Shown here in pieces: positions 736 to 39,076 of a stretch of DNA of 64,000 nt (positions are counted from its first letter, which is position 1; each line of letters opens with the position of its first letter). The notes below the pieces were generated by a model. That model did no database searches, was not told the origin of the DNA, and saw only the letters and a list, made by a program, of their open reading frames with translations. The translations under genes were made by a program, and so were the position numbers. The stretch lies in the sequence record LC819006.1; one strand, given 5' to 3'.

Positions 736-1395
736 ATGCAAACCGCGATGCTTTTAAAAAAGAAAGCAGCTATAGGGGTGCTGACCAATCTGTTAATGCC
801 GTTTGACGGAAATTTCACAGATCTGGCAGGTAATACTGGCATCACCCAAGCCAACTATAGTTTCTTGACAAACCAGAAGTTCGGACAACAGGCAGTCAAG
901 TTCGGATCGAATGGTGGCGTGACTGTTCCGCTAACATCGAAAATCACTTATGCTGGCGATTTCACAATCGAGACATGGGTATCGATGGGATCGCTAACCG
1001 GCGAGCAGATGCTGATTACTGCTGGGGCTGGGTGTTACATTGACTGCTATACGGGCGGCGCCTATAACGGAGGCGCTCCATGTTTTATTGTTTCGATCAA
1101 TCCGACGAATAGTCATGCGTCAATGATTGTCGTTGGCAATAACTGGACGGTTGGGACACTCCATCACCTGGCACTTTGTCGCTCGGGTTCAACAGTAACT
1201 TTGTACGGCGACGGAGCGGTGAAGGGAACAGTGACCAATACCAATGTATGGGCGAATTCAAACTGGACGATCGGCAACTACACGTCGTCTCCGCTCTACG
1301 GTTTCTCTGGCGGTGTTCAGCAAGTTCGAGCATCGAATGTCTGCCGCTATACCGGACCATTCACGCCGCCGTCTAGCCCGTTCGTTCTCGATTAA
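736..1395 (+). CDS. LamG/concanavalin A-like lectin-domain protein, putative tail/receptor-binding accessory protein
   Basis: GDFTIETWV...LHHLALCRSGSTVTLYGDG...NWTIGNY...FSGGVQQVRASNVCRY fits the LamG-3 pattern; N-terminal MQTAMLLKKK tag. Confidence 0.75.
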   Translation: MQTAMLLKKKAAIGVLTNLLMPFDGNFTDLAGNTGITQANYSFLTNQKFGQQAVKFGSNGGVTVPLTSKITYAGDFTIETWVSMGSLTGEQMLITAGAGCYIDCYTGGAYNGGAPCFIVSINPTNSHASMIVVGNNWTVGTLHHLALCRSGSTVTLYGDGAVKGTVTNTNVWANSNWTIGNYTSSPLYGFSGGVQQVRASNVCRYTGPFTPPSSPFVLD

Positions 1396-1408
1396 GTGAA
1401 GACAGAAT

Positions 1409-1939
1409 ATGCAAGCACTCGCAAAGATATCCGGCACCTGGAAAATTGTTAGGCAGATCTTCGTCAAACAAGGCGGAGTCTGGAAAACGGTTAAGCAGGG
1501 CTACATCAAAAGTGGAGGAGTCTGGAAACTCTTCTTCACACTGGGTTTTACCGCTCAGCCACAAACCTTCGTTCTCAGTAGTCATGCGGCTAGTACCGAT
1601 CTTGCTGAAATTAGTTTAACCGGCATGGGGGTTACGGATCACGGAGCGCTTCTCTCCGATCTGTTCATGTCGCAAAATTACGATAGTGGCGATGAGAACA
1701 GTGTAACGTCGTGGACATATCGAATGATGTACGATTCTTCGTCTGCGCCGCCTAGTTGGAGTGGGAATCTGAAAGTAACCAACCTGAGCTCAGGTATTTC
1801 TGTAACGCTGTCGCCCACAGCGGACCCCAGAACGTGGTTGCTTCAAATTCCCAGCGATGGTAGTCAGACGTATCCGGTTAGTCCTTACGACAAATGGATA
1901 CGTGATTCGATGGATACCTATTCAATCAGTGAAGCATAA
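1409..1939 (+). CDS. putative tail-fibre-associated protein with KxGGxWK repeats
   Basis: N-terminus KISGTWK..VKQGGVWK..IKSGGVWK, a repeat type seen in phage tail proteins. Confidence 0.55.
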   Translation: MQALAKISGTWKIVRQIFVKQGGVWKTVKQGYIKSGGVWKLFFTLGFTAQPQTFVLSSHAASTDLAEISLTGMGVTDHGALLSDLFMSQNYDSGDENSVTSWTYRMMYDSSSAPPSWSGNLKVTNLSSGISVTLSPTADPRTWLLQIPSDGSQTYPVSPYDKWIRDSMDTYSISEA

Positions 1940-1941
1940 AG

Positions 1942-1980
1942 ACATAGACTACTCTCCCGTAAGGGAGAGTAGTCGTATGT
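1942..1980. terminator. bidirectional hairpin between convergent genes
   Basis: ACATA-GACTACTCTCCC-GTAA-GGGAGAGTAGTC-GTATGT. Confidence 0.7.
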
Positions 1981-6966: not shown

Positions 6967-9042
6967 ATGTCCGATCCCGTGACCAGCTATCCGTTTGACC
7001 CCACAGGGCAGGCGGCTAGCAACCGAATCGTGGATGAACAGATCGTCGTCCTCCCTCCGGGTGACCGACTGTTCCAGTTCGCCATGCCAGTCTTCTGTCC
7101 TTTCTTCGAAGAAGGACACTCGCTGAAGCTGCGTGATATCAATAACAACGTCACACCATTAGTAATGGGTGTCGACTATTACCTCAGTCACAAGTTCATG
7201 GATGCCTCCTTGGCTACCATGCATCCGATCTGGGGTTCGGTCAGCTTTCTGAAGCCGATCAGCGGTGTTCTGCTGATGACGTACAACACCCTCGGTGGTG
7301 ATTGGACGATCGATCAGGCGACGATTACCGAAATCCTGATGAACACGAGCCAGAACCCGCGTATCACCACGTGGGAACAGGTCGTGGAACGTCCGGTGGA
7401 TTTCCCGGTGATCGATCACCCGTGGGATCTGGCCGATATGGTCGGCATGTCGGAAATCTACGGCGTGCTGGAGAACTTCTACACCGCTTACCTCGCGTCT
7501 CTGGACCCGAATGGCGGTGGTGGCGGTTCCTCGATCATCATCGATCACATCAACAACAAGAACAACCCTCACCAGGTGACGGCTGCTCAGGCCGGCGCTT
7601 ACAGCACGCTTCAGATCGACACGATGCTGGGCGGCTATGTCAAGACGACCGGCACTGCTGCGAACTCGACCCAGTTCAACGGGAAGACGTACGCTCAGAT
7701 GCTCACTGACGTGGCTGGGGTGAAGGTCGCAAACGCTGCCGCCGCAGACAATGCGACGCATGCTGTCACGGCTGATACGGCAACGAACGCCAACGCGCTC
7801 GGCAACAAGAGTCTGTCGCAGCTGATGACTGACGTGGCCGCTACGAAAGTCGCAAACGCTGCTCATGCAGACAATGCCGACCATGCAACAAATGCTGACC
7901 TGGCGACCAACTCCAACCAGTTGGGTGGTCAGTCGCTGACCCAGGTACTCGCCGCGGCTCAGGCTCAAACGGCTGCAGACTCCGCCAAATTCAACGGCAA
8001 GAACTATGCTGATGCAAAGGCAGACATTCTTTCCGGACAGGCAGCAGACTCGGCTCTGTTCAACGGTCAAACGTTGGCAGAGATCATGGCAACACTCCAG
8101 CAAGCTACAGGCGACGCCAGCACGCTGAATGGCAAGTCGTATACCGACATCATGGCGGCAGTGAAGACCACCAAGGTCGACAATGCTACCAATGCAGATA
8201 CGGCAGCCAACGCAACGGCACTCGGTGGCCAGACTCTCTCGCAGATTCTGACGTCGGTGGCAGGTGTGGTTCCTGACCTGGCACACAACTCGGAAGCTGT
8301 GTACGGCTACACGTTCGACCAGCTGGTCACCGCTATCGGACAAAGCACGACCTGGGTGAACGGCCTCGACTACCTGTGTGTTGATCTCGATCTGGAACAC
8401 GCCACGTTGCAGTCGCCGGCGAATGGCGGTACGGTTGACAATTCGTACCACTACCTGTATGTCGGTTCGTTCCCGATTCCGACGACGGGTTCCAGCAACC
8501 AGTACTACGACCCGACTCAAGAGCTTTATAGCTCATCGATGGACTTCTTCATCTACGGTCAGTCGAAGACTCAGCGTCTGCGTGCAAACTTGCAGGTAAA
8601 CGCCGACAACAAGACGATGGGCATCACGTACTACAATGATACCGGACTGGATGTATCGGTTGCGGGTCTGGGCTTCCGCACGGTTGCCAGTACGCTGAAG
8701 TCTTCGGATAACTCGCAGACGGCAAACGTCAACGAAGTTTATCTGAAAGTCAAGACGAGCGAAAACGTCCGTCGTGTTGGTATCTTCCAATTCACGAAGA
8801 ACAGCTTCGTCATCGACGAATCTGAATCGCTGAGTCTCTACGACTCGACGTTCGTGAATCTGAATGGCGTGACCTGGGTCAACCCGAGTCAAACCGCTCA
8901 GGAAGCCGCAAACGCTGCTGCTGTTACGGCAGAAGCTTCGGCACGTGGAACTGCTGATGCGGCAATCCGCACGGACACTCAGGCAGCGCTGGACGCACTG
9001 GCTGATCAGATCAACTCTCTCACCAGCACTCCGGCTGCTTAA
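6967..9042 (+). CDS. tail-fibre-like virion protein
   Basis: N-terminal YPFDPTG..N.I..E virion-type domain; central Ala/Thr/Asn-rich shaft with about 8 (N/D)(S/A)xx(F/L)(N/G)G(K/Q)(T/S) repeats; distinct C-terminal domain. Confidence 0.7.
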   Translation: MSDPVTSYPFDPTGQAASNRIVDEQIVVLPPGDRLFQFAMPVFCPFFEEGHSLKLRDINNNVTPLVMGVDYYLSHKFMDASLATMHPIWGSVSFLKPISGVLLMTYNTLGGDWTIDQATITEILMNTSQNPRITTWEQVVERPVDFPVIDHPWDLADMVGMSEIYGVLENFYTAYLASLDPNGGGGGSSIIIDHINNKNNPHQVTAAQAGAYSTLQIDTMLGGYVKTTGTAANSTQFNGKTYAQMLTDVAGVKVANAAAADNATHAVTADTATNANALGNKSLSQLMTDVAATKVANAAHADNADHATNADLATNSNQLGGQSLTQVLAAAQAQTAADSAKFNGKNYADAKADILSGQAADSALFNGQTLAEIMATLQQATGDASTLNGKSYTDIMAAVKTTKVDNATNADTAANATALGGQTLSQILTSVAGVVPDLAHNSEAVYGYTFDQLVTAIGQSTTWVNGLDYLCVDLDLEHATLQSPANGGTVDNSYHYLYVGSFPIPTTGSSNQYYDPTQELYSSSMDFFIYGQSKTQRLRANLQVNADNKTMGITYYNDTGLDVSVAGLGFRTVASTLKSSDNSQTANVNEVYLKVKTSENVRRVGIFQFTKNSFVIDESESLSLYDSTFVNLNGVTWVNPSQTAQEAANAAAVTAEASARGTADAAIRTDTQAALDALADQINSLTSTPAA

Positions 9043-9053
9043 TCTGAGGAATC

Positions 9054-10175
9054 ATGAGCGACGTCAACATCACTCCCGTCTCACATGTTTTCGACGAGAC
9101 CGGCACCCTTGCCGAGAACTACGTCGAGAACGAACAACGAGATCTGGCACAGCGCAACATCCGCGCTGCTTGCACGCGATACGGTGCTTTCTTCATCGAA
9201 TCGTTCAAGATCCGGGACGCCAATGGCAATCCGCTTGCGGCGAACCAATACCAGTTTGGCCTGTTCGCAGAAGAACTGTCCGAAAAGACTGGTAAGGAAA
9301 TCGCAGGTGCGGTGATCATCACCGACCCGGCAGTGATTTCGCCTGTCTTCATGGACTACCAGTGTGTCGGTGGTCCGTGGGGCGCAACAAACGAGCAGAT
9401 CATCGATCTGTTCACGGCGTTGATGTCTGACGACCGTCCTGTGACGTGGCCGAACATTCTGGGTAAACCGGATGGCTTCAAGCCTGCTCACCACTTCCAG
9501 GATATCGGTGACCTCTTCGGTGCCGAGTACTTCGTCAATGCGCTGGAGCGTCTGACTAACGCGTACCTCATGGGCGACAATGCGTCGCACGATGAGATTC
9601 TGCGTAACATCGATCAGCTGCGTCAGGACATGAATCAGGGCTTGACTGACCTGAGCAATGCTCTGAAGGCATACGCGGATGCAGGTGATGCACGTGTTCA
9701 GGCTAACCTGGATAACGAAGCACAAATCCGCGCTCAGGCTGATACGACGCTCCAGGGCAACATCAACACGGAAGCGACGACTCGCGGCAATGCCGACACG
9801 ACTCTGCAGAACAACATCAACGCCGCGATCACGCATGCGGATAACGGCGATGCTGCACTTCAGCAGAACATTAACTCGGAAGCCACGGCCCGTCAGAACG
9901 CCGACACGGCACTCAATACGAGTATCAATTCGGTGAACACGGCTCTCGCCACTCACGTGGCCGCAAAGGGCAACGTGCACAGCCTGACACCTGCGCAGCT
10001 GGGCGTCTATACGACTGCTCAGGTGGACGCACTGATTGCTCAGATCAACAACCAGCTGACCGGCTATGTCAAGAAGAATGCCGGCGAAGACACCTCGCTT
10101 ACCGTGAGCGGTGGCGTGTTGTATGGCTGGGTGGGTGGTAACTGGCGTGCAGTTTGGCCGCCCCAGTGGCAGTGA
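9054..10175 (+). CDS. tail-fibre-like virion protein with coiled-coil repeats
   Basis: N-terminus resembles that of 6967..9042 (FDETGTLAENYVENE); EAxxRxxADxxLQxNI repeats; C-terminal GWVGGNWRAVWP. Confidence 0.65.
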   Translation: MSDVNITPVSHVFDETGTLAENYVENEQRDLAQRNIRAACTRYGAFFIESFKIRDANGNPLAANQYQFGLFAEELSEKTGKEIAGAVIITDPAVISPVFMDYQCVGGPWGATNEQIIDLFTALMSDDRPVTWPNILGKPDGFKPAHHFQDIGDLFGAEYFVNALERLTNAYLMGDNASHDEILRNIDQLRQDMNQGLTDLSNALKAYADAGDARVQANLDNEAQIRAQADTTLQGNINTEATTRGNADTTLQNNINAAITHADNGDAALQQNINSEATARQNADTALNTSINSVNTALATHVAAKGNVHSLTPAQLGVYTTAQVDALIAQINNQLTGYVKKNAGEDTSLTVSGGVLYGWVGGNWRAVWPPQWQ

Positions 10176-10202: not shown

Positions 10203-11132
10203 ATGGAAGAATTCCATATCGAGGGTAGAATGCTTAGTGTAGATAAAACTGCAAATCTGAAGTTGTGGGACGCAGCCGGTTTTTTCCGGCTGCTTTCCTG
10301 CTGGTTAGAAGATGAAGAAGACGAGTATCGTAACTATAACGATTCTCTGATGGGAACGAGATTCACGTTCCATGAACCGACATATGCCCGAGATCTTTCG
10401 GGAGTGTATATTCTTTACTTCAGTCAAAATGGCAGATTTTACATTGGAAGTAGTCGCGTCTTACGTGACCGCGTCGGTGTCCATATCTCATATCTGAAGA
10501 AAGGTAATCACTATAACCCGAAAATTCAAAAAGCTTACGATGATGGAAAACAGTTTCCAAAAGTTTTCTACATCACTACTCACGGTGAACAGCATGCTCG
10601 TGAAGTGGAGCAGCGTCTTATTGATCTCGTTTTTATGGACGCATGCTGTTTGAATCAGCGAATGCAGGTAGAAGAATATCGTCCTTCTACAGAAGAAACG
10701 CGCGGCAGGCTTTCTGCTGCTGCCAAGAAACAATGGACTGACGAATTCCGAGAAAGAATTCAGGCCATCAATAAGAAGCCTGAGAACCTGGCGAAGCGTA
10801 TCGCCAATGGCAAGAAACTCGCAGCCGACCCCAAATACATCAAGAAGCTTTCTGAGGCTTCTAAAGGCATCTGGCAGGACCAGCATTACGTCGCTAAACA
10901 GCGTGAGTCTGGTGCAGCTGTCTGGAAAGACGAAGGCTTCAAAGAGCGTCATAAGGCCGCCATGAAGGCTAAGTGGGCCGATCCTGAATACAAAGCTCGC
11001 GTGGTTGGTAAACGTGCTGAGGCTCAACGTAAACCAGTTACGATTAATGGAGTCCAGTATTCTCATGCAAAAGCAGCTGCACAAGCGCTAGGCATGAGTG
11101 AGACTTCGGTGCGCAGAAAATGCGACAAATAA
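10203..11132 (+). mobile_element. free-standing GIY-YIG homing endonuclease
   Basis: SGVYILYFSQNGRFYIGSS...R catalytic motif, basic helical repeats, C-terminal HTH-like KPVTINGVQYSHAKAAAQALG; start could be the ATG at 10350. Confidence 0.85.
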
Positions 11133-11178
11133 AAAGCAATAAGCCGTCGGGATATAGTGACTCTATAGGGGATTGATC

Positions 11179-11667: not shown

Positions 11668-11669
11668 AA

Positions 11670-12734: not shown

Positions 12735-12740
12735 GGAAAT

Positions 12741-13301: not shown

Positions 13302-13311
13302 GGAGAAGACC

Positions 13312-14379: not shown

Positions 14380-14386
14380 TTCCAAG

Positions 14387-14428
14387 TGCTGCCTGACTCC
14401 TTCGGGAGTCGGGTAGTATCTTTTTTTC
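14387..14428 (+). terminator. Rho-independent terminator
   Basis: TGCTGCCTGACTCC-TTCG-GGAGTCGGGTAGTA followed by a T-run. Confidence 0.8.
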
Positions 14429-14474
14429 TATTGGTAGGTATTCTTTTTTGACCTATCCCACTGAGGAATACGAA

Positions 14475-16731: not shown

Positions 16732-16735
16732 GACG

Positions 16736-16765
16736 CATATGGAGTGGCCTAGGCCACTCCATATG
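16736..16765. repeat. perfect 30-bp palindrome (possible terminator or processing hairpin)
   Basis: CATATGGAGTGGCCT-AGGCCACTCCATATG between two co-oriented rSAM genes. Confidence 0.8.
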
Positions 16766-23337: not shown

Positions 23338-23339
23338 TC

Positions 23340-23759: not shown

Positions 23760-23791
23760 TCCTATAGTGTCCGACTAACTAGGGGATTATT

Positions 23792-24921: not shown

Positions 24922-25644
24922 TTAATTAGGATAAAGTCCGGTACTGGGGGTGAATGCGGAAGTATACAGACAATAATTGTAAATACGAACACGATCCAGA
25001 TAACCGTTAAATCCAGCGTAGGTTGAGCCGGAGAGTCGGTTATCGTAATACCCAGCGATATTCAGATTGCCGCCGAAACCAACAGTACCCAAGGCTGATG
25101 TACTTGATCCCGCCACTGCACCATTCACAAACAGGTAAGTAGTCGATCCAGCACGCCCTAAGGCAAAATGATTCCACGAGTTGTTGGTAACGGCGATATT
25201 GCCGGTGAGGAAAGCTGTATCGCCCGTTCCACTCGGCGTACGTAGAGCCAGTTTCAGGTTATCAAGATGCCAGCGCCATACGCCGCCAGTAGCGCTATAG
25301 GCACCATACGAAAGGATGGTGTTATAGCCGCCTGTGTAAAGGGTATTACCTTGTCCGAGACAATAACCCCAGGCTTCCATCCAGAAGTCACCAGAAAACT
25401 TCAGATCGGAGGTAAGCGGAGTTGCAAGATAAACACTTCCTCCCGCGGCCACTTGGCTTTGGTTAAGACTTTTTGTACCGTTCTTCGATTGCGCAGTAGA
25501 TAGAGTGAGTCCGCCGCCTCCACCCGCGGTTGAAAAACTTCGACTGGTAAGAACAGAGTCCTTAACAACTGCATCTTCGAAGTCCAGTGCCATGCTGAGT
25601 CCGGGCACTGAAGCTTTCTTGCTTAAAAGCATCGCGTCTAACAT
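24922..25644 (-). CDS. LamG/concanavalin A-like lectin-domain protein
   Basis: MLDAMLLSKK tag; GDFWMEAW..WNHFALGRAGSTTYLFVNG..LNIAG..FNGYLDRVRI. Confidence 0.75.
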   Translation of the reverse strand: MLDAMLLSKKASVPGLSMALDFEDAVVKDSVLTSRSFSTAGGGGGLTLSTAQSKNGTKSLNQSQVAAGGSVYLATPLTSDLKFSGDFWMEAWGYCLGQGNTLYTGGYNTILSYGAYSATGGVWRWHLDNLKLALRTPSGTGDTAFLTGNIAVTNNSWNHFALGRAGSTTYLFVNGAVAGSSTSALGTVGFGGNLNIAGYYDNRLSGSTYAGFNGYLDRVRIYNYCLYTSAFTPSTGLYPN

Positions 25645-25703
25645 AACTGTTCTCAGTAAATGATCATAAAATCTTGTGACAATGCTGCTTTTTAGGAAAC
25701 AAT

Positions 25704-26180
25704 ATGTTGACGCCAATAATGATGTCGAAGAAGAAAGCATCGAATATAGGCGGAACTTACAGATACCTTCGCCTAAACAACATCCTGCCACCGTCTGGAA
25801 CCAGTTATGCAATGATAGTTGAAATCGAAGTTTTCGATTCATCTGTCGGGACTAATTGGTGCTGGCAACCTGGAGTAGTGGCTTCAGCTTCGAGTTCATA
25901 TACTGGTCAGCCTCCTTCGGCCGCTATCGATGGCGTCATCGGTACGAATGCAGGAAATCGCTGGACGTCAAATGGCGGTACTGGCCAATGGTTTATGGTC
26001 GACTTCGGTCAAGCCCGATACTTTGATTCGATTCAGTTGGCGGTATGGACTGGATTTAACCAGGATCCGACCAGTTTCACCATTCAGGGCAGTAATAACG
26101 GTAGTACTTTTACCGACTTGAAATCCGTGAATCGTGGACTCTATCCCAATCTCACACTTACTGAGGTATACAAGACATGA
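25704..26180 (+). CDS. F5/8 type C (discoidin-like) carbohydrate-binding protein
   Basis: ASASSSY..PSAAIDG..RWTS..QWFMVDFGQARYFDSIQL..FTIQGSNNGSTFT; MLTPIMMSKKK tag. Confidence 0.75.
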   Translation: MLTPIMMSKKKASNIGGTYRYLRLNNILPPSGTSYAMIVEIEVFDSSVGTNWCWQPGVVASASSSYTGQPPSAAIDGVIGTNAGNRWTSNGGTGQWFMVDFGQARYFDSIQLAVWTGFNQDPTSFTIQGSNNGSTFTDLKSVNRGLYPNLTLTEVYKT

Positions 26181-30636: not shown

Positions 30637-31491
30637 TTAGGCGTTCACGCCTTCCAGTTGGAAGAGCGGTTCGCTGATACCCAGTTCCAGGTTGTCCGTG
30701 AGCGACTCGTTGATGTAGTCGAGCGGATACATTGCCTGGACGAACGTGGCGACTTGCACGCCGATTGCTTCCGTGAACGGGAAGGTGCCCGTTTGCGACT
30801 GCGCCTGGATGACGGAATCTGCTCCCGTACACAGTGCCAGTTCCGAAACGATCGCACGGCCCGACTGCTGGGTGATGATCTGCGAAGCGTTGCGGATTTC
30901 GTTGATGTCGAACGAATCGAGTGGCAGACCGATGATGGTGGATGCCAGCACCGAATAACCAGCCAGCAGGTTGGTGCCCGATTCCGTCAGGTCCGTCGGA
31001 GTCGGATTCAGCGTCGATTCATCCGGCACTACGTCCGAGACAGTGGACGTACCATCGTCGAGCGTTTGCTTCAGGAACAGGTCGGTGTCGGCCTGCGAGA
31101 AGTCCACGCGCTTGATCCAGTACGCCCAGTACGGCGTACCGTTGTACTCGACTTGCTGGCGCAGTGCGTAACGAGCACGATACTGAGCCGGCAGGTCGTT
31201 GTCGAGCAGACGCAGCGAGAACGGCATGTGGTTGAAGAGCGCGCCGTCGTTGGATTTGTGCTGGAGAATCTTCGGATAGGTCGAACCATCAGCGCCGGTT
31301 GCCATACCGAGACCACCACGACCCAGTGCGATATAGCCGAGCTTCGGATAGACGCCAGAGCCCGGGTACTGCTGAGCCAGGGTGTTGAACTTTTCGTTCA
31401 GCGTGGTGTATTTCAACCACTTGTAAGCTGCGCCTCGAACCATTGCGGATTGCAGTGCCGAGAACCACAGCGTGCGGGTTACGTGTTCCAT
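30637..31491 (-). CDS. putative virion structural protein
   Basis: 284-aa ORF in the structural operon with core-gene codon style. Confidence 0.55.
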   Translation of the reverse strand: MEHVTRTLWFSALQSAMVRGAAYKWLKYTTLNEKFNTLAQQYPGSGVYPKLGYIALGRGGLGMATGADGSTYPKILQHKSNDGALFNHMPFSLRLLDNDLPAQYRARYALRQQVEYNGTPYWAYWIKRVDFSQADTDLFLKQTLDDGTSTVSDVVPDESTLNPTPTDLTESGTNLLAGYSVLASTIIGLPLDSFDINEIRNASQIITQQSGRAIVSELALCTGADSVIQAQSQTGTFPFTEAIGVQVATFVQAMYPLDYINESLTDNLELGISEPLFQLEGVNA

Positions 31492-31514
31492 GAGTGACCT
31501 GTCAAAGGGTGAGG

Positions 31515-33716
31515 TTACGATTCAAACAATGAGGTTTTTTGATCGTCGGTCAGGGCCATGTAACGGTCCATGCCAAGGATCGGTTGAAGCGGAGTACCAG
31601 ACGTATCCGGCGGATTGACCAGGCCAATCTCCACACGACTCAGACTGAAGTAGTGCTGATGGATCTGACCACGATCGGGTTCATGCGGACCGTTTCTCAA
31701 GTCCACGTAGATCTTGCCCTGACCGTACACCTTATGCGACAGGATCGTCGAGAAGATGTCGAGGCTAAAGCTTTCGTTATTGACGACGTCGGTGTTTTGA
31801 CTGATCACATCGACTGCGCCAAGACGCATGTACTCGTGACCCTCGCCATCGATTTTCTGATCGCCAACACGAACGCTAGGCAAATCGGTCATGATGGTTT
31901 CATCGTCCGCCATTTGCGTGACCACCTGAATGGTGTAGCTCGACAGATCAATGAGTGCGTTAGCCATCGCCTTCTGGATGTTACGCAGGCTCGGAGCAGT
32001 CACAAGTGCTTTACCCAGAGCCGCGCTTACCAAAGACGTATAGAGCAAACCGAATTCGTCTTGAGAAAGCGTATCGAAGTTCAGGTTCAGGCCCAGGAGC
32101 CATTCGCTGTACGTCGTACCTTCAGGTTCCAGTCGTACGTAAGCGTCACCGTAGAAACGCTCGACATACTTGAAGACTTCACCGCGGTCTTGCATGCCTT
32201 CCTGATACGCAACCAGATTGCGCTGGAAGTTAGCAGATTTGAAGATCCCATCAGTGGCTGCATAGAACGCATCGATCGAAATCATCGGGAATGCTTCGAC
32301 CACATATTTCTTAGCCGTGTTCCATGCGAAGTCATCGACGTACGTCATGTCAATGCCTTTCTTGAGATCAGCATCCGAGGGAATCGGATAACGTTGAACC
32401 CGCTGAGCGCCGAGCAGAGGAATCACAGGCTGGTTGAAGCCGTACTGTTTGTACATGCAATAAGTCGCCAGAATGTAGGCATCCTTCACAGACAGAACAA
32501 TACGCTCGCTCGTCTTCGGATTTTGTACATTGACGATCGCCGAATACAAACCGTTGGAAGCGTAATACAACCAGTGCGCCACCTGAATGTCTTCGAGCTT
32601 GTAGGTCTGAGCGCCAGAGTAATCGACCATCGCCGATTCCAGGAGCTTCGTCTGAACCACATTGGACGGGCTGTCCTTGAGGAACTGTGTAATGTCGTCC
32701 TGACCGTACGTAATCTCGTCGAGGTTATCCGGAGCAAGATTGTCCTCCTTAGCCAGGAAGGTCGGCAAGTCGATATATTCGGGCGCACCAGAAGACGGAA
32801 TGACCGTCATATCTGTACGCTTCATGGTGATATCGGCGTAGACGTTTTCGGTCACATTGGTCGTATCGTGACGCATCGTGTAATCAGCGAGCGGAATGTT
32901 CCGCTTGGTCATCAGAGCGTCGACGAGTTTGTCCAGTGTGTCGTTGGCACCCGGATGGCGCTGGTAATACAGGATGTTCCTGTAGAAGTGCATCGCCTGT
33001 TCCAGATTCATAAACTGGTAATACTGACCCAGATTCGAATTGGATGCCAGATAGTTGCTGACGTAGAAGCTGTGAGCTTCGATTGTCTTGTGGCGTTTCA
33101 AGCGCTCGGTCAGGATCAACGGCACGAGCATCATGTAGTAAATCGACATGACCACGCCGTAATACAAACTGTCCGAAATGTTATACTGCTCGTTATAATA
33201 GCGCTTGAAATAAATGGTCGTCCAGTCCTGCAGCGAGTTAACGAGTGTGTACTCATTGGACTCGATTGCGTTAACCGGGTAGCCCAGTATTGTATGGTCA
33301 GGGGCGGCTATAGCAGTCGCCTTATCAACCGGATATAGTACCCCCAGAATGACATCTTCCTGAGTAGGATACTTGGCGAGAAGCTCGCCATATTGCCGCG
33401 TACCGAACTGGTAATCGCGCGCAGTGTTCTTGTGAATGCGGAGATTTGCCGTGGTGAAGTCAATCACATCCAGATTGTCGGATGAAACGACTTGCATCAT
33501 GGTGTCTGTCGGATGGTACTCGCCTGCCAGATTCATGTAGTACTTCCATGTTTCTGGCTTATCCGCGTCTGTTTCGTATTCTTGGAATTGGAGAAGTCTG
33601 TCATTCACGCGTTGTGCCACGTACTCGGACTTGATAATCAAAGTCTGAGCCAATGTCAGCACGCTATTGAGATAGACCTGAAATGAATTATCGCTCACGG
33701 TAGGTATCCATGTCAT
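31515..33716 (-). CDS. putative virion (baseplate-type) structural protein
   Basis: 733-aa ORF divergent from the portal-like gene; WKYYMNLAGEYH motif recalled from phiKZ-like virion proteins. Confidence 0.55.
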   Translation of the reverse strand: MTWIPTVSDNSFQVYLNSVLTLAQTLIIKSEYVAQRVNDRLLQFQEYETDADKPETWKYYMNLAGEYHPTDTMMQVVSSDNLDVIDFTTANLRIHKNTARDYQFGTRQYGELLAKYPTQEDVILGVLYPVDKATAIAAPDHTILGYPVNAIESNEYTLVNSLQDWTTIYFKRYYNEQYNISDSLYYGVVMSIYYMMLVPLILTERLKRHKTIEAHSFYVSNYLASNSNLGQYYQFMNLEQAMHFYRNILYYQRHPGANDTLDKLVDALMTKRNIPLADYTMRHDTTNVTENVYADITMKRTDMTVIPSSGAPEYIDLPTFLAKEDNLAPDNLDEITYGQDDITQFLKDSPSNVVQTKLLESAMVDYSGAQTYKLEDIQVAHWLYYASNGLYSAIVNVQNPKTSERIVLSVKDAYILATYCMYKQYGFNQPVIPLLGAQRVQRYPIPSDADLKKGIDMTYVDDFAWNTAKKYVVEAFPMISIDAFYAATDGIFKSANFQRNLVAYQEGMQDRGEVFKYVERFYGDAYVRLEPEGTTYSEWLLGLNLNFDTLSQDEFGLLYTSLVSAALGKALVTAPSLRNIQKAMANALIDLSSYTIQVVTQMADDETIMTDLPSVRVGDQKIDGEGHEYMRLGAVDVISQNTDVVNNESFSLDIFSTILSHKVYGQGKIYVDLRNGPHEPDRGQIHQHYFSLSRVEIGLVNPPDTSGTPLQPILGMDRYMALTDDQKTSLFES

Positions 33717-36700
33717 CCAGCGTTAAAATCGTCGAAAACGTCACGAACGTTTCCAATGGCAAGAAGCTGCCTGTCTTGGAATTCGTTCGAACTCATAAGC
33801 CACTCGCGGCTGCGATCAGTAAGGCTACGCCTGGTACGGATCGAGTAACGCGCGACGGTCAGGGCAACCGTAAGGTTAGCTCGCCTGACTATGCTTCGAT
33901 GATCAGCGTTCACCGCACGATCAGTCGTCGTAACAAAGATGCGAAAATGACTTTCCAGATGTTGCCGGATTTGAAGCTGGCAATGGAAATGGTCATCTCG
34001 CTTATCATGTCGCCCAAAGACATGTTCAGTGATGAGGTTCTCATCCTGTCGGATTCGTCTGAACTCCTGCCCGCATCGCTGATGTCTTCGATGCTGCAAG
34101 TGACGACGGACTACTTCAAGAAGAACCACAACCTGACGGAATTCATTCAGCACATGCTTGAAGAGACTCTCGGCCTGCAGGGGGCTCTCCCCGTCGCCGT
34201 GATTCCTGAGAACGCGCTGGATGACCTCATCAACAACTACAATGCGAACCTGTCGCTGGAACGGTTCAGCACTGAATTTGACGTTGAGAGAAATATCCCC
34301 CATCCCCTGGGCATGCTTGGTGTACCAGACTATCTGACACCACGAACAAATAATACACGGCCTGTTACGGGTCGTATGAAGTTTGGCTCGAAGGTGTCGT
34401 TTGACCTGCAGTCGTACGAGACGTATCGGTCGATGAATTCGAGCAAGCCTTCTTCGGCTACCTCGGGTATCGCCTTCTCGAAACTCTTCAGCGACAAGGT
34501 CAAAGAAGAAGACAAGAGCAAGCCTTGGACCTTCAAGGTGCCTGAAGGCATGTCGGCTAAACCCGGCTCCGAAGGCAATGGAAATGAAATCGACGCAGAC
34601 AATCTGTGCTTTGTGACCGATAACATTTCCATCCTGAAGCTGCCTGTGCTGAAGGAACGCGCTCGTGGTCAGCGCGTGCATGAAGTCTTGAAGAAGCGCG
34701 GCTATAACAAGTTGCAGGCTTCTCTCGAATCGATGACGCTTGCGCTGTCGAACAAGCAAAAAGAAATCATCAAGAAAGATGCGCAAGACAAAGGCCGCAC
34801 ACTCGCTGATAGCGAAGTGGAAAGCCTGCTCTTTAAGAACCGTCGGTTTGCACATACGCCGGTTGCTGCCTTGCGCACGAACGGTAACCTCAAACGCAAC
34901 TCGATCGGCGAAGCCATGATCAAGGAGTTCGATACGGCGTGTTTCATCCCCGTGTCGATTGAGGGCGACCCCACTCGCAAGCTTGGTGGTTTCATCATGC
35001 TGGATGAGGATGGTTATCCTCTTACCACGCATAACGCAGATCCGGAAGAGATCGTCGACCTCTCCACCTACGCTGGTGGTTCGGGTAACTTCGTCTCCAG
35101 CATGAACGATCGAAGCAATTCGATCATGAACGGCAAGACGACTGAAGGCGTGTCGCAATACATGCTCAAGAAGTTCTTCACGAAGACGTTTGGCGAGATG
35201 GTTGAAAAAGACCTGATTGATCGCGTGAAGAATGGTCAGTACGACAACGGCGTTCAGCTGGCTTCGAATGAAGACTTCTACTGGCTGATGTTCACCCGCT
35301 GCATGAAGGGTCAGCGCACCCATCTGCTGTGGCTGCCCAACGAGTTCCTGGTGTACTTCGCACTGGACTACGACGAGATGGGCTTTGGTAAGAGCCTCCT
35401 GGACGACATCCGCAACATCACCAGCATGCGTATCATGCTGATGGTCTCGGGTATCGCCGCCTCGCTTCGTAACTCGATTGGCCGCACCAAAGTGACCGTC
35501 AAGCTGGATGAAGACGATCCCGATGCTGAAAAGTCCATCGAAGACATCCAGGATGAAATCCTGAAGAGCCGGATGAACCCCATCCCGTTCGGTATCAATA
35601 ACGTAGCGGATATTTCCAAGTATCTGCAACGTTCGTGCTATGAATTCGAGATCTCGGGTTCGAGCGCAATTCCGGACATGCAGGTTCAGTTCGAGCAATA
35701 CAACTCGCAGTATCCGAAGCCCGATGAAGATCTGATCAACCAGTTGAAAGAACTGTCGATCCATCACTTCGGTCTGACCAAAGACATGATCGATGCGGCT
35801 GAAGGTGTGGACTTCGCGATTCAAGCGGCGACCAACAACCTGATGACCATGAAGCGCGTGCAGCGCTGGCAGCGTAAGGTTGAACCTCTCGCATCGGAAT
35901 ACGTTCGCAAAGTCGCATTGGCTAGCGAATCGCAAATCGACGACCTGCGTCAGCTCGTCAGCAACAACTTCAAGCAACTGCAAGTCGAAAAGGTCAAGCG
36001 TTATTTCGACCTCAAAGACGATTCATTGCTCAATGACGAAGACTTCAAGAAGCTCGTCACGGAACAATGTTTGAACGTCTTCCTGAATAACCTGAAAGTC
36101 GAACTGCCTTCTCCGGCTGCGACGACTCTGGAAGCTCAGAAGCAACAGTTCACCGATGCTGCCGAGTTCTACAAGGAAGCAATCGATTACATCATCAACG
36201 AGTCCTTCTTCGACACGTCCGTTATGGGCGAAGACATGAACGGTCACGTCGATATGATCAAAAACATTATCCTGTCGCATTACATGCGCGAATACATGGC
36301 GAAGAACGCTATTCTGCCCGAACTGTCGGATCTCACTACGATCGGCGAAGATGGCAAGATCGCAGTCAACGTTATGGATAGCCTGGAGCAGCACATCAAG
36401 GCTCTCGGTATGTCGACGGGTAACTTCTTCAAGCGCTTCAAACACTTCGCACAACTCCAGACGGCACTCATGCAGGGCGTGGGTGAAAGCAGCACGACTG
36501 GTGAAACCGACACTGGTGGTGGTAGTTCTGGTGGCGGAGATGACTGGGGCGGCGGTGGCGGTGGTGACGACGATCTGCCTGGTCTGGATGATATTCCGAC
36601 CGATGATGGTTCGGGTACCAGCGACGAAACGTCTGATGAAGACACGGGATCTTCGGACGAAGATACGGGTGATGGTGGAAACGCCAACCCGGATGAAAAC

Positions 36701-36721
36701 AACGACGAAGAAGAATCGTAA
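33710..36721 (+). CDS. probable portal protein (phiKZ gp129-like)
   Basis: about 1000 aa, largely helical, with an acidic Gly/Asp tail; size and position match the phiKZ-like portal; assignment from recall, not alignment. Confidence 0.55.
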   Translation: MSSSVKIVENVTNVSNGKKLPVLEFVRTHKPLAAAISKATPGTDRVTRDGQGNRKVSSPDYASMISVHRTISRRNKDAKMTFQMLPDLKLAMEMVISLIMSPKDMFSDEVLILSDSSELLPASLMSSMLQVTTDYFKKNHNLTEFIQHMLEETLGLQGALPVAVIPENALDDLINNYNANLSLERFSTEFDVERNIPHPLGMLGVPDYLTPRTNNTRPVTGRMKFGSKVSFDLQSYETYRSMNSSKPSSATSGIAFSKLFSDKVKEEDKSKPWTFKVPEGMSAKPGSEGNGNEIDADNLCFVTDNISILKLPVLKERARGQRVHEVLKKRGYNKLQASLESMTLALSNKQKEIIKKDAQDKGRTLADSEVESLLFKNRRFAHTPVAALRTNGNLKRNSIGEAMIKEFDTACFIPVSIEGDPTRKLGGFIMLDEDGYPLTTHNADPEEIVDLSTYAGGSGNFVSSMNDRSNSIMNGKTTEGVSQYMLKKFFTKTFGEMVEKDLIDRVKNGQYDNGVQLASNEDFYWLMFTRCMKGQRTHLLWLPNEFLVYFALDYDEMGFGKSLLDDIRNITSMRIMLMVSGIAASLRNSIGRTKVTVKLDEDDPDAEKSIEDIQDEILKSRMNPIPFGINNVADISKYLQRSCYEFEISGSSAIPDMQVQFEQYNSQYPKPDEDLINQLKELSIHHFGLTKDMIDAAEGVDFAIQAATNNLMTMKRVQRWQRKVEPLASEYVRKVALASESQIDDLRQLVSNNFKQLQVEKVKRYFDLKDDSLLNDEDFKKLVTEQCLNVFLNNLKVELPSPAATTLEAQKQQFTDAAEFYKEAIDYIINESFFDTSVMGEDMNGHVDMIKNIILSHYMREYMAKNAILPELSDLTTIGEDGKIAVNVMDSLEQHIKALGMSTGNFFKRFKHFAQLQTALMQGVGESSTTGETDTGGGSSGGGDDWGGGGGGDDDLPGLDDIPTDDGSGTSDETSDEDTGSSDEDTGDGGNANPDENNDEEES

Positions 36722-36735: not shown

Positions 36736-36761
36736 CCACTGGGGGCCGAAGCCCCCAGTGG
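36736..36761 (+). terminator. stem-loop terminator
   Basis: CCACTGGGGGC-CGAA-GCCCCCAGTGG followed by TTTT. Confidence 0.75.
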
Positions 36762-36809
36762 TTTTATGCCGCGATCTTGTGATAAACGATAAAATTGCAA
36801 GGGATCATT

Positions 36810-37640
36810 ATGTTAGCAGCTTTTCTAATGAGGAAGCCGGTCTTATCGAGAGGCAGTGCAATCTTCACTACTCCAGGCACCTATGACTTCATCGTCCCGG
36901 CAGGAGTCACATTGCTGTGTGGTGTGGGCATCGGTGCCGGTGGAGGTGGTTGGCAAAACACAATCGGTGGAACGAGTACCTGGGGTTCTTCTGGTGGGGG
37001 TGGTGGACTTGGCTGGAAAAACGCAATTCCAGTTACTCCTGGGGAACATCTGATTGTCGTTGTTGGAGCTTTGGGCATTACCGCGGTCGGTAATGCAATC
37101 GGTACCAACGGCGGTGATAGTTATCTCGCTCGTGGATCTACCAAGCTATTTGCTGGGTACGGTGGTTTATGCGGCGGTGCTACTGGCTCAAACACGTCTT
37201 ATGGAAAGGGCGGTGGTTATCTAGGTGACGGCGGCGGTAATGGCGGGGCTGGTGTCAACTTTGATTATGCTGCAGCTGGCGGTGGTGGGGCTGGCGGGTA
37301 TACAGGTAACGGTGGGCAAGGCACAGATATCTCGCAGGGCGCAGCTGGGTTAGGAGGCGGTGCTTCTGGCGGACGAGGAGGTACTAACTATACCGACAAC
37401 GGTTCCGCAGGCCGTGGGGGCGGTACTGGACTATTTGGTCTTGGCAATAGTGCTGCCGCGCAGACGACCAGATGGGGTAACGGTTTACCTGGATCCCAGA
37501 TCGCAGGCGGTGGAGAATTCGGCGGCGGTTCTTCTTCTTCGCGTGTGATCACTCCGAATACACCAGGTCTTGATGGAGGCTTGCGTTTGATTTGGGGTAA
37601 GAACCGAGCGTACCCGTCGACTGATTGCGGTGCAGATTAA
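36810..37640 (+). CDS. glycine-rich tail-associated protein
   Basis: FTTPGTYDFIVPAGVT..GAGGGG..GGGGGLGWKNAIPVTPGE, typical of glycine-rich phage tail domains; MLAAFLMRK tag. Confidence 0.7.
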   Translation: MLAAFLMRKPVLSRGSAIFTTPGTYDFIVPAGVTLLCGVGIGAGGGGWQNTIGGTSTWGSSGGGGGLGWKNAIPVTPGEHLIVVVGALGITAVGNAIGTNGGDSYLARGSTKLFAGYGGLCGGATGSNTSYGKGGGYLGDGGGNGGAGVNFDYAAAGGGGAGGYTGNGGQGTDISQGAAGLGGGASGGRGGTNYTDNGSAGRGGGTGLFGLGNSAAAQTTRWGNGLPGSQIAGGGEFGGGSSSSRVITPNTPGLDGGLRLIWGKNRAYPSTDCGAD

Positions 37641-37641
37641 G

Positions 37642-37675
37642 CATACACTACCTGGCTTTCGCCAGGTAGTGTATG
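37642..37675. terminator. bidirectional hairpin between convergent genes
   Basis: CATACACTACCTGGC-TTTC-GCCAGGTAGTGTATG. Confidence 0.75.
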
Positions 37676-37700
37676 GTCTAACAGCAACGAGTCATGCATT

Positions 37701-38447
37701 TTAATAACCCGTAATAAACGGATTGAAGTTGCCTGTTGTGTAACGAGCGATATTGCTGACGCGCGTTCCGTAGAAATTACCAGAAGCGTACCAGCTAACC
37801 GCTCCGCCACTACCTCCTAACATTCGACCAACCAGAAGAGCCGTCGAATAATTCAGGACGTAGTTATAGGCGTCAGCTGCTGGGGCAGCCAAGGCAGTGC
37901 CGTCATAGAACATCTGCCATTGCCCACTCATGCGTTGGTACGCGATGTGGTGCCATGCGCCTCTGACGATCTTACCAATCGACGGGTTTGCGATCTGCTT
38001 TTGCGACGACGCATTAGCGTACGTCCAGGCCCACAAGGACGTATAGCCGTACGAGCTTTCCGTATAAGCCAGATCGAAGTTGTATGGCGATGTCCCGTTA
38101 TGCCACGAACCCCATGAAATGAACGGCCACCAATACGAATTATCCGCGCTCTGGAAAAGAATGTTCTTGACCCAGAAATACGTTTCGACAGTGAAGTCGT
38201 TCGTACCAGCGAGCAGGTAAGTCGGATTAGGTATCGACAGATAAGCGCCGCCTGCATCCGGAGTTTTTATCGTGGGATAACCAAACAACTTATTCGTTGA
38301 ATCGACAGTCATCCCACTGTTGGTGACTACTGCGTTTTTGCTGGAAAAATCTTTGATCGTTCCGCCGTAGGCGTTCAGAAGAAGCAGTGTATTGGAGTCC
38401 ACAGCAGGACCCACTTGCTTCTTATACAACAGCATTGAATCTAACAT
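37701..38447 (-). CDS. LamG/concanavalin A-like lectin-domain protein
   Basis: MLDSMLLYKK tag; NDFTVETYF..WHHIAYQRMSGQWQMFYDG..LLVGR..GTRVSNIARY. Confidence 0.75.
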   Translation of the reverse strand: MLDSMLLYKKQVGPAVDSNTLLLLNAYGGTIKDFSSKNAVVTNSGMTVDSTNKLFGYPTIKTPDAGGAYLSIPNPTYLLAGTNDFTVETYFWVKNILFQSADNSYWWPFISWGSWHNGTSPYNFDLAYTESSYGYTSLWAWTYANASSQKQIANPSIGKIVRGAWHHIAYQRMSGQWQMFYDGTALAAPAADAYNYVLNYSTALLVGRMLGGSGGAVSWYASGNFYGTRVSNIARYTTGNFNPFITGY

Positions 38448-39076
38448 CAGACAGTCGTCCCGTGGGTAATTGAAAGGGAATTGATCTTCCAGTTTCCCAT
38501 AGTGGCAAACTGAGTTCCTACGATCGTGCCCGAAGACGTAAGGTAAGAACCCAAGACCCAATCGACATTACACTTGCGTTGAGTTGCGAAAGTGTTGCTG
38601 TAGATGGTATTGCCATTGAGTTTGCAAAGGAAAGCACTTCCTTTACGCTGCCAGAAGAAATCAAATGGAGTATTGAGAGCGATGTTGTTCGAACCACTCG
38701 TCGACTGATAAACGCTTTCTGAAATAGAACCGATCGACAACCGAACCGTTCCGTCGTTATACCGTTGGAAACAGAATTCTCCCTGACCTGCTACTTGCAA
38801 CCATTTGCCGATGAGGTAAAGCGAGTTTCCATTCCCGGTGTTTTGGCTATATACGACGGCATTCATTCGGATTTCCATATCTTCGCCGATAGGGTAAGGC
38901 GAAGTTCCATAGGGAATCCGAATATAGTCAATCTGAGCGCCGCCCGCAAATGTGTAAGAGCCGTCGCTGCCCTGTGTGACACCAGAGGACTTAGTCCAGG
39001 TGTTGGTCGCGCCACCACCTTCAATGTTGATCACATTTGCAACAGCTTTCTTCTTTAATAAAATTGATTCCAGCAT
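38447..39076 (-). CDS. lectin-like beta-sandwich protein
   Basis: MLESILLKKK tag; beta-rich ConA-like pattern; stop overlaps the downstream ATG. Confidence 0.6.
   Translation of the reverse strand: MLESILLKKKAVANVINIEGGGATNTWTKSSGVTQGSDGSYTFAGGAQIDYIRIPYGTSPYPIGEDMEIRMNAVVYSQNTGNGNSLYLIGKWLQVAGQGEFCFQRYNDGTVRLSIGSISESVYQSTSGSNNIALNTPFDFFWQRKGSAFLCKLNGNTIYSNTFATQRKCNVDWVLGSYLTSSGTIVGTQFATMGNWKINSLSITHGTTV

Follow-up and report, generated by a model that had tools for sequence, protein, structure and literature searches.

A transferable N-terminal leader ahead of unrelated binding folds in Ralstonia jumbo phage FLC4-11C, a candidate address for the virus particle

In phages with branched systems of receptor-binding proteins (RBPs), tailspikes are docked to adapters by conserved N-terminal peptides of 7-11 residues: a heptapeptide and an undecapeptide in K1-5, K1E and SP6, and a "conserved peptide" in Klebsiella phages of the KP32, KP34, Menlow and PhiK64-1 groups (Leiman 2007, cited by Latka 2019, PMC6872550). 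These tailspike-docking peptides and the capsid-targeting sequence of T4 are the closest analogues of the leader that is the subject of this paper. The internal proteins of T4 have a common leader of about 10 residues, unrelated bodies and a hypervariable locus. Two further systems bear comparison. The cargo-loading peptides of encapsulins resemble the leader as short addresses that direct diverse cargo to an HK97-fold shell; unlike it, they are found mostly at the C-terminus, and their binding site is within the shell. Capsid decoration proteins of the Hoc type are non-essential binding modules on the capsid, but Hoc binds through its whole domain, unlike the leader.

The stretch of DNA analyzed here (the window; 64,000 nucleotides, genome positions 62001-126000) is from Ralstonia phage FLC4-11C, a phiKZ-related, 225-kb jumbo phage of the genus Chiangmaivirus, in a group infecting Ralstonia and Burkholderia. 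An earlier note on the window had picked out six dispersed genes with a common N-terminal tag. All six N-termini are confirmed in position and strand; they belong to gp62, gp88, gp89, gp100, gp101 and gp102, and every one of these genes is intact (Table 1). The set is larger than had been noted: extending the motif search to the whole genome and to relatives, as the note had proposed, adds five leader genes outside the window (gp1, gp2, gp198, gp199 and gp238), for a genome total of at least 11 copies dispersed over five loci, most with a promoter-like element of their own, and yields 40 leaders in five Chiangmaivirus genomes. The consensus of about 10 residues reads M; L, Q or H; usually E or D; a small residue; a hydrophobic residue; L; L; any residue; K; K. 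Position 9 is K and position 6 is L or M in all 40 leaders, and position 7 is L or M in 38 of them. The degenerate pattern ATG-N9-HTN-HTN-HTN-NNN-AAR-AAR is matched five times in the window where 0.01 matches would be expected; none of 100 shuffles reaches five. The weakest leader of the six is that of gp100 (..FLMRKP); its orthologues in SURPRISE13 and RsoM3USA have better ones. A scan of 2.9 million IMG/VR contigs for the strict leader at the start of long open reading frames returned the RSF1 and RSL2 records only. One gene, gp197 (698 aa, DUF4326, DNA-polymerase-like), gave a weak profile match and was left out of the member count. The contention that several of the tagged genes look AT-richer than core genes is only weakly true: leader genes have a mean GC content of 48.9%, the value over all genes being 51.7% (p=0.008).

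Table 1. Leader genes of the window and their putative control elements (window coordinates)
Feature	Position	Strand	Description
Terminator-like hairpin (680-705), then promoter-like TCTTGTGA (709-716)	680..716	+	Upstream of gp62
gp62	736..1395	+	Leader 736-765 and Laminin_G_3 beta-sandwich, 219 aa; deposited start at 778 omits the leader
gp88	24922..25644	-	Leader 25644-25615 and Laminin_G_3, 240 aa
Divergent control region gp88/gp89	25645..25703	.	59 bp
Elements TTTTATGA (25671-25664, -) and TCTTGTGA (25672-25679, +)			Within gp88/gp89 control region
gp89	25704..26180	+	Leader 25704-25733 and F5/8 type C (discoidin) domain, 158 aa
Strong terminator hairpin (36736-36761), then promoter-like TCTTGTGA (36775-36782)	36736..36782	+	3' of portal gene
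gp100	36810..37640	+	Degenerate leader 36810-36839 and glycine-rich domain, 276 aa
gp101	37701..38447	-	Leader 38447-38418 and LamG-like domain, 248 aa
gp102	38447..39076	-	Leader 39076-39047 and divergent ConA/LamG-like body, 209 aa
Promoter-like TCCTGTGA	39099..39106	-	Upstream of gp102; element conserved in RSF1 and RSL2

The deposited annotation gives five of the six window genes non-leader starts. Four kinds of evidence all favor the leader start. The leader ATG is the first in frame in five of the six window genes and, over the whole genome, in 10 of 11 copies (that of gp88 is preceded by two other in-frame ATGs); 29 of 32 genes have a purine-rich, Shine-Dalgarno-like motif 7-14 nt upstream; metagenome gene calls, made independently, begin at the leader; and its codons vary, the Leu positions using six different codons and the Lys positions both. 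The deposited starts of the five genes are considered to be mis-set. Among orthologues of gp88 and gp102 the leader is retained down to approximately 50% identity of the bodies. The leader exists, is translated, and is conserved at the level of amino acids, since its codons vary; a DNA-level repeat or regulatory element is rejected as the source of the similarity because the codons differ. Export signals of the Sec, Tat and lipoprotein types have a basic n-region, a hydrophobic core that is seven or more residues long, and then a cleavage site or lipobox. The leader has a hydrophobic run of only 3-4 residues with its basic residues downstream, and neither twin-Arg nor Cys; all three types are ruled out on this anatomy, and the earlier judgment that the tag is not a Sec signal is upheld.

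The bodies that follow the leader are diverse. The 40 leaders front at least seven groups of bodies that are unrelated by BLAST and span at least four folds; LamG, SPRY, discoidin (F5/8C), Gly-rich and gp83-like types are represented, among others. Within the window, the domain labels originally attached to gp62, gp88 and gp89 stand above Pfam cut-offs (Laminin_G_3 at 56.4 bits for gp62 and 49.1 bits for gp88, cut-off 27.6; F5_F8_type_C at 56.3 for gp89, cut-off 28.2), but those of gp101 (Laminin_G_3, 22.1 bits, under the same 27.6) and gp100 (Gly_rich_2, 21.5 bits against 24.3) fall below. Pfam assigns nothing to gp102, which hhalign profile-profile comparison relates to the LamG group with a probability of 90.5%. 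Carbohydrate binding by these modules is a prediction from their folds; SPRY and Kelch domains classically bind proteins and not sugars, a point against the docking model preferred below. AlphaFold gives gp88 a mean pLDDT of 87.5; residues 1-9 of the model score below 50 and have no secondary structure while the rest is a confident beta-sandwich, so that the leader, as modeled, is not part of the body fold. In one instance the place where the leader ends is also where bodies have been exchanged: FLC gp89 and RSL2 ORF083 are nearly identical from the promoter to leader codon 11, beyond which one has a discoidin and the other a LamG body, a comparison that marks the end of the leader as the recombination junction of this module swap.

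The exact placement of this junction at the end of the leader, the conserved promoter-like and Shine-Dalgarno-like elements upstream, and the near-identity of leader DNA in several copies (gp2, gp62 and gp88) are what would be seen if there were no docking at all, the leader being a legacy of a gp83-like ancestor that is kept for the good expression afforded by the promoter, the ribosome site and A-rich lysine codons at the gene start, and as a short patch of homology for cassette exchange. This we consider distinctly unlikely. Identity of the amino acids survives synonymous codon changes, and the leader persists across genera whose DNA cannot be aligned; it is hard to see what its hydrophobic positions would do for translation; and in gp456 of phage 201phi2-1, a protein with tandem domains, the leader is found at the true N-terminus only. 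The analysis supports the leader as a protein-level, N-terminus-specific and transferable element that is placed ahead of unrelated folds.

In these respects it is much like the branched-RBP peptides, which are also short and conserved and begin several otherwise unrelated proteins within a phage group, which also have conserved hydrophobic positions and differ from one phage group to another, and which embody the same idea of standardised, exchangeable units. The differences are several. The leader occurs in 11 copies scattered over five loci of a 225-kb chimallivirus. There is no sequence similarity between those peptides and the leader. Their cargo consists of trimeric beta-helix depolymerases, whereas that of the leader consists of small single beta-sandwich domains: the leader-bearing bodies, 156-280 aa in length, comprise LamG, SPRY, F5/8C and Gly-rich domains, and none is a trimeric beta-helix tailspike or depolymerase. 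A 10-residue contact made by presumably monomeric domains would give an avidity below that of the trimeric tailspike precedents, which is a consideration against docking. The branched-RBP peptides are located in the tail, whereas the sole hint of location for the leader, provided by its relative phiKZ gp83, is the head. The T4 capsid-targeting sequence (IPI-III, Alt) is likewise an N-terminal leader of about 10 residues on unrelated proteins encoded at hypervariable loci, and its association with the head matches that of the one localised relative of the leader. The T4 internal proteins have small basic bodies, however, whereas the leader precedes lectin-like domains.

The relationship to gp83 is new. 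The first 6-7 residues of the leader also open the phiKZ gp83 family of virion proteins in phiKZ, PhiPA3, EL, 201phi2-1 and Psa21, where the N-terminal motif, with which the leader complies, is M, hydrophobic, E/D, x, hydrophobic, L (members compared: phiKZ gp83; PhiPA3 gp080-083; EL gp153 and gp155; 201phi2-1 gp452 and gp456). The same starting residues precede unrelated bodies in EL gp153 and gp155 and in Psa21 genes 89 and 90 (the "virion structural" labels in Psa21 being by homology only). The basic pair is not found in the phiKZ, EL and PhiPA3 versions; its absence from phiKZ and EL implies that the KK half of the leader may have another role, which counts against docking. The gp83-like genes of Chiangmaivirus have the full leader and retain synteny with the DNA-polymerase gene; relative to the gp83 family, Chiangmaivirus has added a basic half, K-K(-K), and in it the leader has spread to a far wider range of bodies. 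The leader is all that the six window genes have in common with the gp83 family: the gp83 N-domain (approximately 200 aa, ending in a conserved G-W-R-P), with or without a Kelch propeller, is absent from all six proteins; RsoM3USA gene 00154 and an unannotated ORF of SURPRISE13 do have it.

The record for 201phi2-1 gp456 states that it was "identified as virion protein by mass spectrometry", and that for phiKZ gp83 reads "structural head protein", the only localisation note for any relative (the head assignment of gp83, like its N-terminal processing, is taken from record notes alone). The existence of relatives with the same first 6-7 residues that are annotated as virion proteins lends support by homology to a plug-in virion address. 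On the same grounds, the leader is most likely an address label by which interchangeable binding modules are built into the virus particle. The plug-in targeting peptide proposed at the outset survives as regards transferability, unrelated folds and homology to virion proteins; neither attachment to a baseplate or fibre nor a role in host range finds support. The only relative with a localisation note is a head protein, and a search with Pfam and PHROGs among 20 structural neighbours found no T4gp10-like docking or adapter domain. Sequence searches of the PDB with LamG, SPRY, Gly-rich, gp102 and gp83-type queries matched no virion chain. Virion proteomics is absent from the FLC6 and SURPRISE13 papers, and FLC4-11C is mentioned in no paper found; RP12 and RP31, the latter a related Ralstonia phage with a virion proteome (PMC5468394), are not among the tblastn matches of gp88, gp102 and gp199.

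The head note is compatible with a location on the outside or on the inside of the head, and the gp83 cluster is made up mostly of internal head proteins; both points count against docking on the exterior. In phiKZ, gp83 sits among the vRNAP and internal-head-protein genes gp79-gp97, and the arrangement is alike in Psa21 and PhiPA3. This location raises the possibility, somewhat doubtful in our estimation, that the leader is a capsid-loading signal, sending modules into the assembling prohead much as the capsid-targeting sequence does in T4 and cargo peptides do in encapsulins, so that variable binders would be packaged with the DNA, ejected, and bound to host proteins before the phage nucleus forms. 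Three window leader genes do follow the portal gene, bodies such as SPRY and Kelch typically bind other proteins, and the divergence of gp199, whose positional orthologues are only 38-55% identical among FLC phages with 97-98% DNA identity (in the window stretch compared), is as expected of cargo in an arms race. The solved chimallivirus virion structures (entries in the PDB copy searched, among them 9xpe, 9xqd, 9xqs, 11ed, 11lx and 36za) contain no ordered gp83-like or leader-bearing chain, which also fits and which speaks against the docking model. Against loading, neither the six proteins nor the set of 40 leaders shows a conserved Glu-containing protease site after the leader, and S/A/G-x-E, the phiKZ-type protease site, is missing from residues 1-40 of all six. 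Moreover, gp62 adjoins homologues of proteins deposited under the name inner baseplate protein, and phage LamG_3 and discoidin domains are usually within external virion proteins (PMC7824862). The broader conjecture, that a head-loading signal is common to the Chimalliviridae and that the ejected, fast-evolving binders (LamG, SPRY, discoidin, Kelch) neutralise or capture host factors within minutes of infection, before the phage nucleus is in place, is unlikely; if true, it would make head loading the jumbo-phage counterpart of the T4 internal-protein system, with eukaryote-like binding folds.

The expression signals of the leader genes and their neighbors, which are virion genes (portal, and homologues of phiKZ gp128, gp157 and gp161), both favor the docking model set out below. 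An element T[AG]TGA, identified by inspection and pattern matching, lies 25-35 nt upstream of leader genes and after terminator hairpins, a placement that matches the one at the terminase gene and at the gene of an internal head protein. It resembles the late TATG promoter of phiKZ (PMC4666361), and by this analogy the leader genes would be expressed late. Enrichment of k-mers upstream of genes yielded AT-rich (early-type) words only and no clear late motif; sigma-70 promoters are not enriched (13 found, 13.3 expected). The start of gp101 overlaps the gp102 stop (TGATG), and gp101 lacks a promoter motif of its own.

The position of gp89 and its orthologues, always directly upstream of and overlapping the endolysin gene (in the window by 4 nt, gp90 starting at 26177), suggests something else: a role outside the virion, with the leader as a peripheral membrane anchor or as a binder of some cellular or phage factor, for example near the lysis machinery, and with modules that act in the infected cell or are released at lysis. 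A hydrophobic stretch with two or three lysines after it would suit an interfacial helix, and the leader is disordered in isolation in the gp88 model. This reading is nevertheless distinctly unlikely: the relatives with the same starting residues are annotated as virion proteins, the versions in phiKZ, EL and PhiPA3 lack the basic pair, a hydrophobic run of 3-4 residues is short, and Sec, Tat and lipobox features are absent.

The explanation that we prefer, and that we advance tentatively and with somewhat less than even confidence, is that the leader is a flexible address peptide that docks interchangeable binding modules on a common site of the virion, where they are displayed on the outside. 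During late assembly, the leader would dock each small module (LamG, SPRY, discoidin, Gly-rich or gp83-like) onto one conserved virion site, and the exterior of the particle would thereby come to carry a changeable set of accessory binding modules. With every module using the same leader, modules could be gained, lost or replaced behind it while the particle itself stays unchanged. That lectin-like modules should be virion components is readily accommodated, lectin folds of this kind occurring in virion proteins of other phages (PMC7824862). The docking model would further imply that the six window proteins are in the virion and exposed on the particle, that docking is determined by the leader itself, and that its receptor is presumably the conserved site.

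The leader provides a concrete and searchable candidate for a sorting signal of particle proteins in the nucleus-forming jumbo phages. The leader genes are the most changeable set of genes in phages that are otherwise nearly identical, and recognizing them corrects many deposited genes in both start codon and product name. The phages concerned are under study for biocontrol against Ralstonia and Burkholderia glumae, and the question that the leader modules pose for their biology is whether they are surface adhesins or injected cargo.

The short basic leader that the earlier note had read at the start of six dispersed adhesin-like genes lies at exactly the positions claimed for it, in gp62, gp88, gp89, gp100, gp101 and gp102 of Ralstonia phage FLC4-11C; all six genes are intact. 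Its degenerate back-translation finds five matches in the window where 0.01 are expected, and none of 100 shuffles yields five or more. The window corresponds to nucleotides 62001-126000 of the FLC4-11C genome (LC819006.1, 225,600 bp), with window 20000-42000 matching genome 82000-104000 at 100% identity. Extending the motif check to the whole genome by a six-frame profile scan brings in five more members, gp1, gp2, gp198, gp199 and gp238, all outside the window, and no additional member within it; gp197, a weak profile match, is left out of the count. Close relatives are FLC8, FLC6, FLC4-4C and FLC4-5C (97-99% DNA identity); RSL2, RSF1, RsoM3USA and Burkholderia phage SURPRISE13 are remoter (80-88%). 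Taxonomically, RSF1 and RSL2 belong to the genus Chiangmaivirus, to which FLC6 was assigned by its authors (PMC8066314), and the name is used here for the whole group of phiKZ-related jumbo phages around FLC4-11C.

Among 40 leaders, position 1 is invariably M, position 2 is L (24), Q (7), H (5), F (3) or I (1), and position 3 is E in 17 and D in 8. Position 4 is A, S or P in 33, and position 5 is M, L, F or I in 32. Position 6 is L (37) or M (3), position 7 is L in 33 and M in 5, and K occupies position 8 in 22, position 9 in all 40 and position 10 in 36. The impression that the tagged genes are AT-richer is correct, but the effect is modest (48.9% GC versus 51.7% in other genes, p=0.008).

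The deposited starts of five of the six window genes fall inside or downstream of the leader, a conflict that made its translation a matter for testing. Four lines of evidence favor translation of the leader. No in-frame ATG precedes that of the leader in five of the six window genes, or in 10 of the 11 copies across the genome; the exception is gp88, with two earlier ones. Of 32 genes from five genomes, 29 have a purine-rich motif resembling a ribosome site 7-14 nt 5' of the start. All six Leu codons occur at the conserved leucine positions, and both Lys codons at the lysine positions. Independent gene calls on metagenome contigs place the start at the leader in orthologues of gp88 (52-92% identity) and gp102 (47-78% identity). 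The gp101 start overlaps the gp102 stop as TGATG, an arrangement typical of translational coupling. We conclude from these sequence features that the leader is translated and the deposited starts are mis-set. Other annotation faults of the public record include the label 'putative thymidylate kinase' on gp198 and gp199, an RSF1 leader gene annotated only as a 36-aa fragment together with an ORF on the opposite strand, and a second RSF1 leader gene with a truncated N-terminus.

Coordinates of the features discussed (L005-L010 and L108 are further phage record stretches, each with its own numbering)
Feature	Window	Other stretches
Leader-bearing genes	736 (+, gp62); 25644 (-, gp88); 25704 (+, gp89); 36810 (+, gp100); 38447 (-, gp101); 39076 (-, gp102)	
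Deposited starts inside or downstream of the leader	778; 25719; 36828; 38435; 39034	
Public-record annotation faults	778; 25719; 36828; 38435; 39034	L005 23642-24829; L007 39853-41242; L108 5001-5690
Start codon of gp238, end		L006 14600 (genome 225600)
Virion genes gp99, gp98, gp61	30637-36721 and 32-667	
Endolysin gene gp90	26177-26974	
Second N-terminal module (gp63, gp87)	1409-1939 (+); 24231-24920 (-)	
Second N-terminal module, relatives		L007 2967-4028, 27548-28207; L008 26333-28290; L009 3561-4088; L010 3555-4106, 25284-25973
gp67 and gp68	6967-10175	
Metabolic gene block	11173-24178	
GIY-YIG/HNH nuclease genes	10203-11132	L007 12327-13244, 20329-20493

What follows the leader is diverse. 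Pfam assigns Laminin_G_3 to gp62 and gp88 (above cut-off), to gp101 and gp2 (below cut-off) and to gp238, F5/8 type C to gp89, SPRY to gp1, gp198 and gp199, and a sub-threshold Gly_rich_2 match to gp100; a Pfam search with gp102 gave no match, and its family aligns with the LamG group at 90.5% probability. Leader ORFs gathered from FLC4-11C, RSF1, RSL2, RsoM3USA and SURPRISE13 amount to 33 non-redundant proteins, to which 11 were added later; with the first 14 residues cut off, the 33 form at least seven groups unrelated to one another by BLAST. In the AlphaFold model of gp88 (19 sequences, mean pLDDT 87.5), residues 1-9 score below 50 and lack secondary structure, and a beta-sandwich begins directly behind them; the leader is thus predicted to be a free extension outside the fold.

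Exchange of bodies can be read at a single junction. The start regions of FLC4-11C gp89 and RSL2 ORF083, beginning with the promoter-like element, stay near-identical up to and including leader codon 11 and then diverge fully, into a discoidin body as in RsoM3USA gene 00050 and SURPRISE13 gp91 on the one side and a LamG body as in RsoM3USA gene 00049 on the other: a deletion or replacement junction exactly at the leader's end. At each of the five leader loci the complement of bodies differs from genome to genome, and in FLC phages with 97-98% DNA identity over the compared window stretch, positional orthologues of gp199 share only 38-55%. The discoidin gene gp89 translationally overlaps the endolysin gene gp90 (PG_binding_1 plus N-acetylmuramidase), a pairing kept in the relatives that have a discoidin gene (SURPRISE13, RsoM3USA).

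TC[TC]TGTGA lies 20-32 nt 5' of the ATG in four of the six window genes; the gp88 element is TTTTATGA. These promoter-like elements, which the relatives keep, often stand directly behind a terminator-like hairpin. T[AG]TGA occurs at similar distance 5' of the terminase gene and of a phiKZ-type internal head protein gene, and the phiKZ late promoter consensus is TATG, with G as start site (PMC4666361); late expression of the leader genes can therefore reasonably be inferred. The start codon of gp238 ends at the final base of the linear FLC4-11C record, so its upstream control region spans the record ends; RsoM3USA was deposited as a circular record.

The link to the virion comes through the phiKZ gp83 family, whose sole common part with the six window genes is the leader. 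M, hydrophobic, E/D, x, hydrophobic, L opens phiKZ gp83, PhiPA3 gp080, gp081 and gp083, EL gp155 and 201phi2-1 gp456 (in this tandem-domain protein at the true N-terminus only); EL gp153, which lacks the gp83 N-domain, has the same start directly before a Kelch propeller. Record notes describe 201phi2-1 gp456 as 'identified as virion protein by mass spectrometry', EL gp155 as 'virion structural protein' (it adjoins a gene named tail fiber protein) and phiKZ gp83 as 'structural head protein', in a cluster with vRNAP and internal head protein genes. The leader genes of the window also have virion genes as neighbors: gp99 (the portal), gp98, gp60 and gp61 are homologous to phiKZ gp129, gp128, gp157 and gp161, respectively, and gp65 has a match in a 'baseplate assembly protein' family. 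Two PDB entries name the gp161-type chain differently, 'Inner Baseplate Protein' and 'Vertex binding complex protein', depositor names that leave its location ambiguous; gp128-type and gp161-type chains co-occur in three entries.

The best-supported reading is that the leader serves as an address peptide, by which all modules would be incorporated into the particle via a single shared site. Its action would resemble that of the conserved peptides with which K1-5, SP6 and Klebsiella-phage tailspikes dock, or that of the T4 capsid-targeting sequence, yet it belongs to neither class. The cargo of the tailspike systems, a trimeric beta-helix tailspike or depolymerase, is not that of the leader genes, and no T4gp10-like adapter was found in 20 structural neighbors (Pfam, PHROGs). 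No conserved protease site like that behind the T4 leader follows the leader in the six proteins or the 40 leaders, which tells against the main rival, that the leader loads modules into the head interior as in T4. That alternative draws on the head annotation and gene neighborhood of phiKZ gp83 and on the fact that SPRY and Kelch domains bind proteins, and we consider it unlikely. Mounting for external display is tentatively favored, at somewhat less than an even chance, because phage LamG_3, discoidin and SPRY domains generally belong to external virion proteins (PMC7824862) and because exchangeable proteins are known to be mounted through short docking peptides at their N-terminus (PMC6872550). 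Searches of the PDB found no chain of the gp83 family or of any leader-bearing body, as fits a flexibly tethered surface module and disordered internal cargo alike; a literature search found no virion proteome for Chiangmaivirus and no description of this leader. Counted less likely are a localization role unrelated to the virion, which is improbable, and a purely historical or expression role, at least equally so.

Other N-termini are also shared. Directly downstream of gp62 and gp88, respectively, gp63 and gp87 carry a 43-residue N-terminal repeat of type G-x-W-K-x-V, 44% identical, ahead of unrelated bodies. The repeat family, kept in all relatives, has no Pfam model. Some members of the gp83 N-domain family have a repeat-type N-terminus in place of the leader, and in some metagenomic ones it is similar to the repeat of gp63 and gp87, which may be an alternative anchor. 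The N-terminal ~175 residues common to gp67 (691 aa) and gp68 (373 aa), whose C-terminal parts differ, match PHROGs annotated virion structural, tail and tail fiber protein. A long same-strand block of unusual metabolic genes, conserved genus-wide, encodes a cupin, four radical-SAM/Fe-S oxidoreductases, two 2OG-Fe(II) oxygenases, two dihydrofolate-reductase-like proteins and several proteins of unknown function; it could specify a nucleotide or DNA modification pathway. The GIY-YIG nuclease gene gp69 (present in FLC4-11C and RSF1, absent from the same place in RSL2, RsoM3USA and SURPRISE13) and an HNH endonuclease gene between the radical-SAM and DHFR genes of RSF1 look like mobile homing-endonuclease insertions.

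How far the leader extends depends on its form. When IMG/VR was scanned for the strict DNA form (M-L-x-x-M-L-L-K-K-K), 89 stretches matched; the five long ORFs that start with it are confined to RSF1 and RSL2 records, the other matches being out-of-frame, AT-rich DNA, and the basic form is thus specific to this lineage. Pseudomonas phage Psa21 has a gp102 homologue, and the first six or seven leader residues open both its gene 89, with a LamG-like body, and the adjoining gene 90, with an unrelated body. Gene 90 is a member of the phiKZ gp83 family, which occurs in 119 phage records. The full basic leader stands on Chiangmaivirus copies of the gp83 N-domain, RsoM3USA gene 00154 and a SURPRISE13 ORF (the latter lacks any annotation); both genes adjoin a DNA-polymerase-like gene, as phiKZ gp83 adjoins gp82, at the locus that gp198 and gp199 occupy in FLC4-11C. 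Its start in the gp83 family and its full form on these copies indicate that the leader is old in the Chimalliviridae; in Chiangmaivirus it has acquired its K-K(-K) half and spread onto many bodies.
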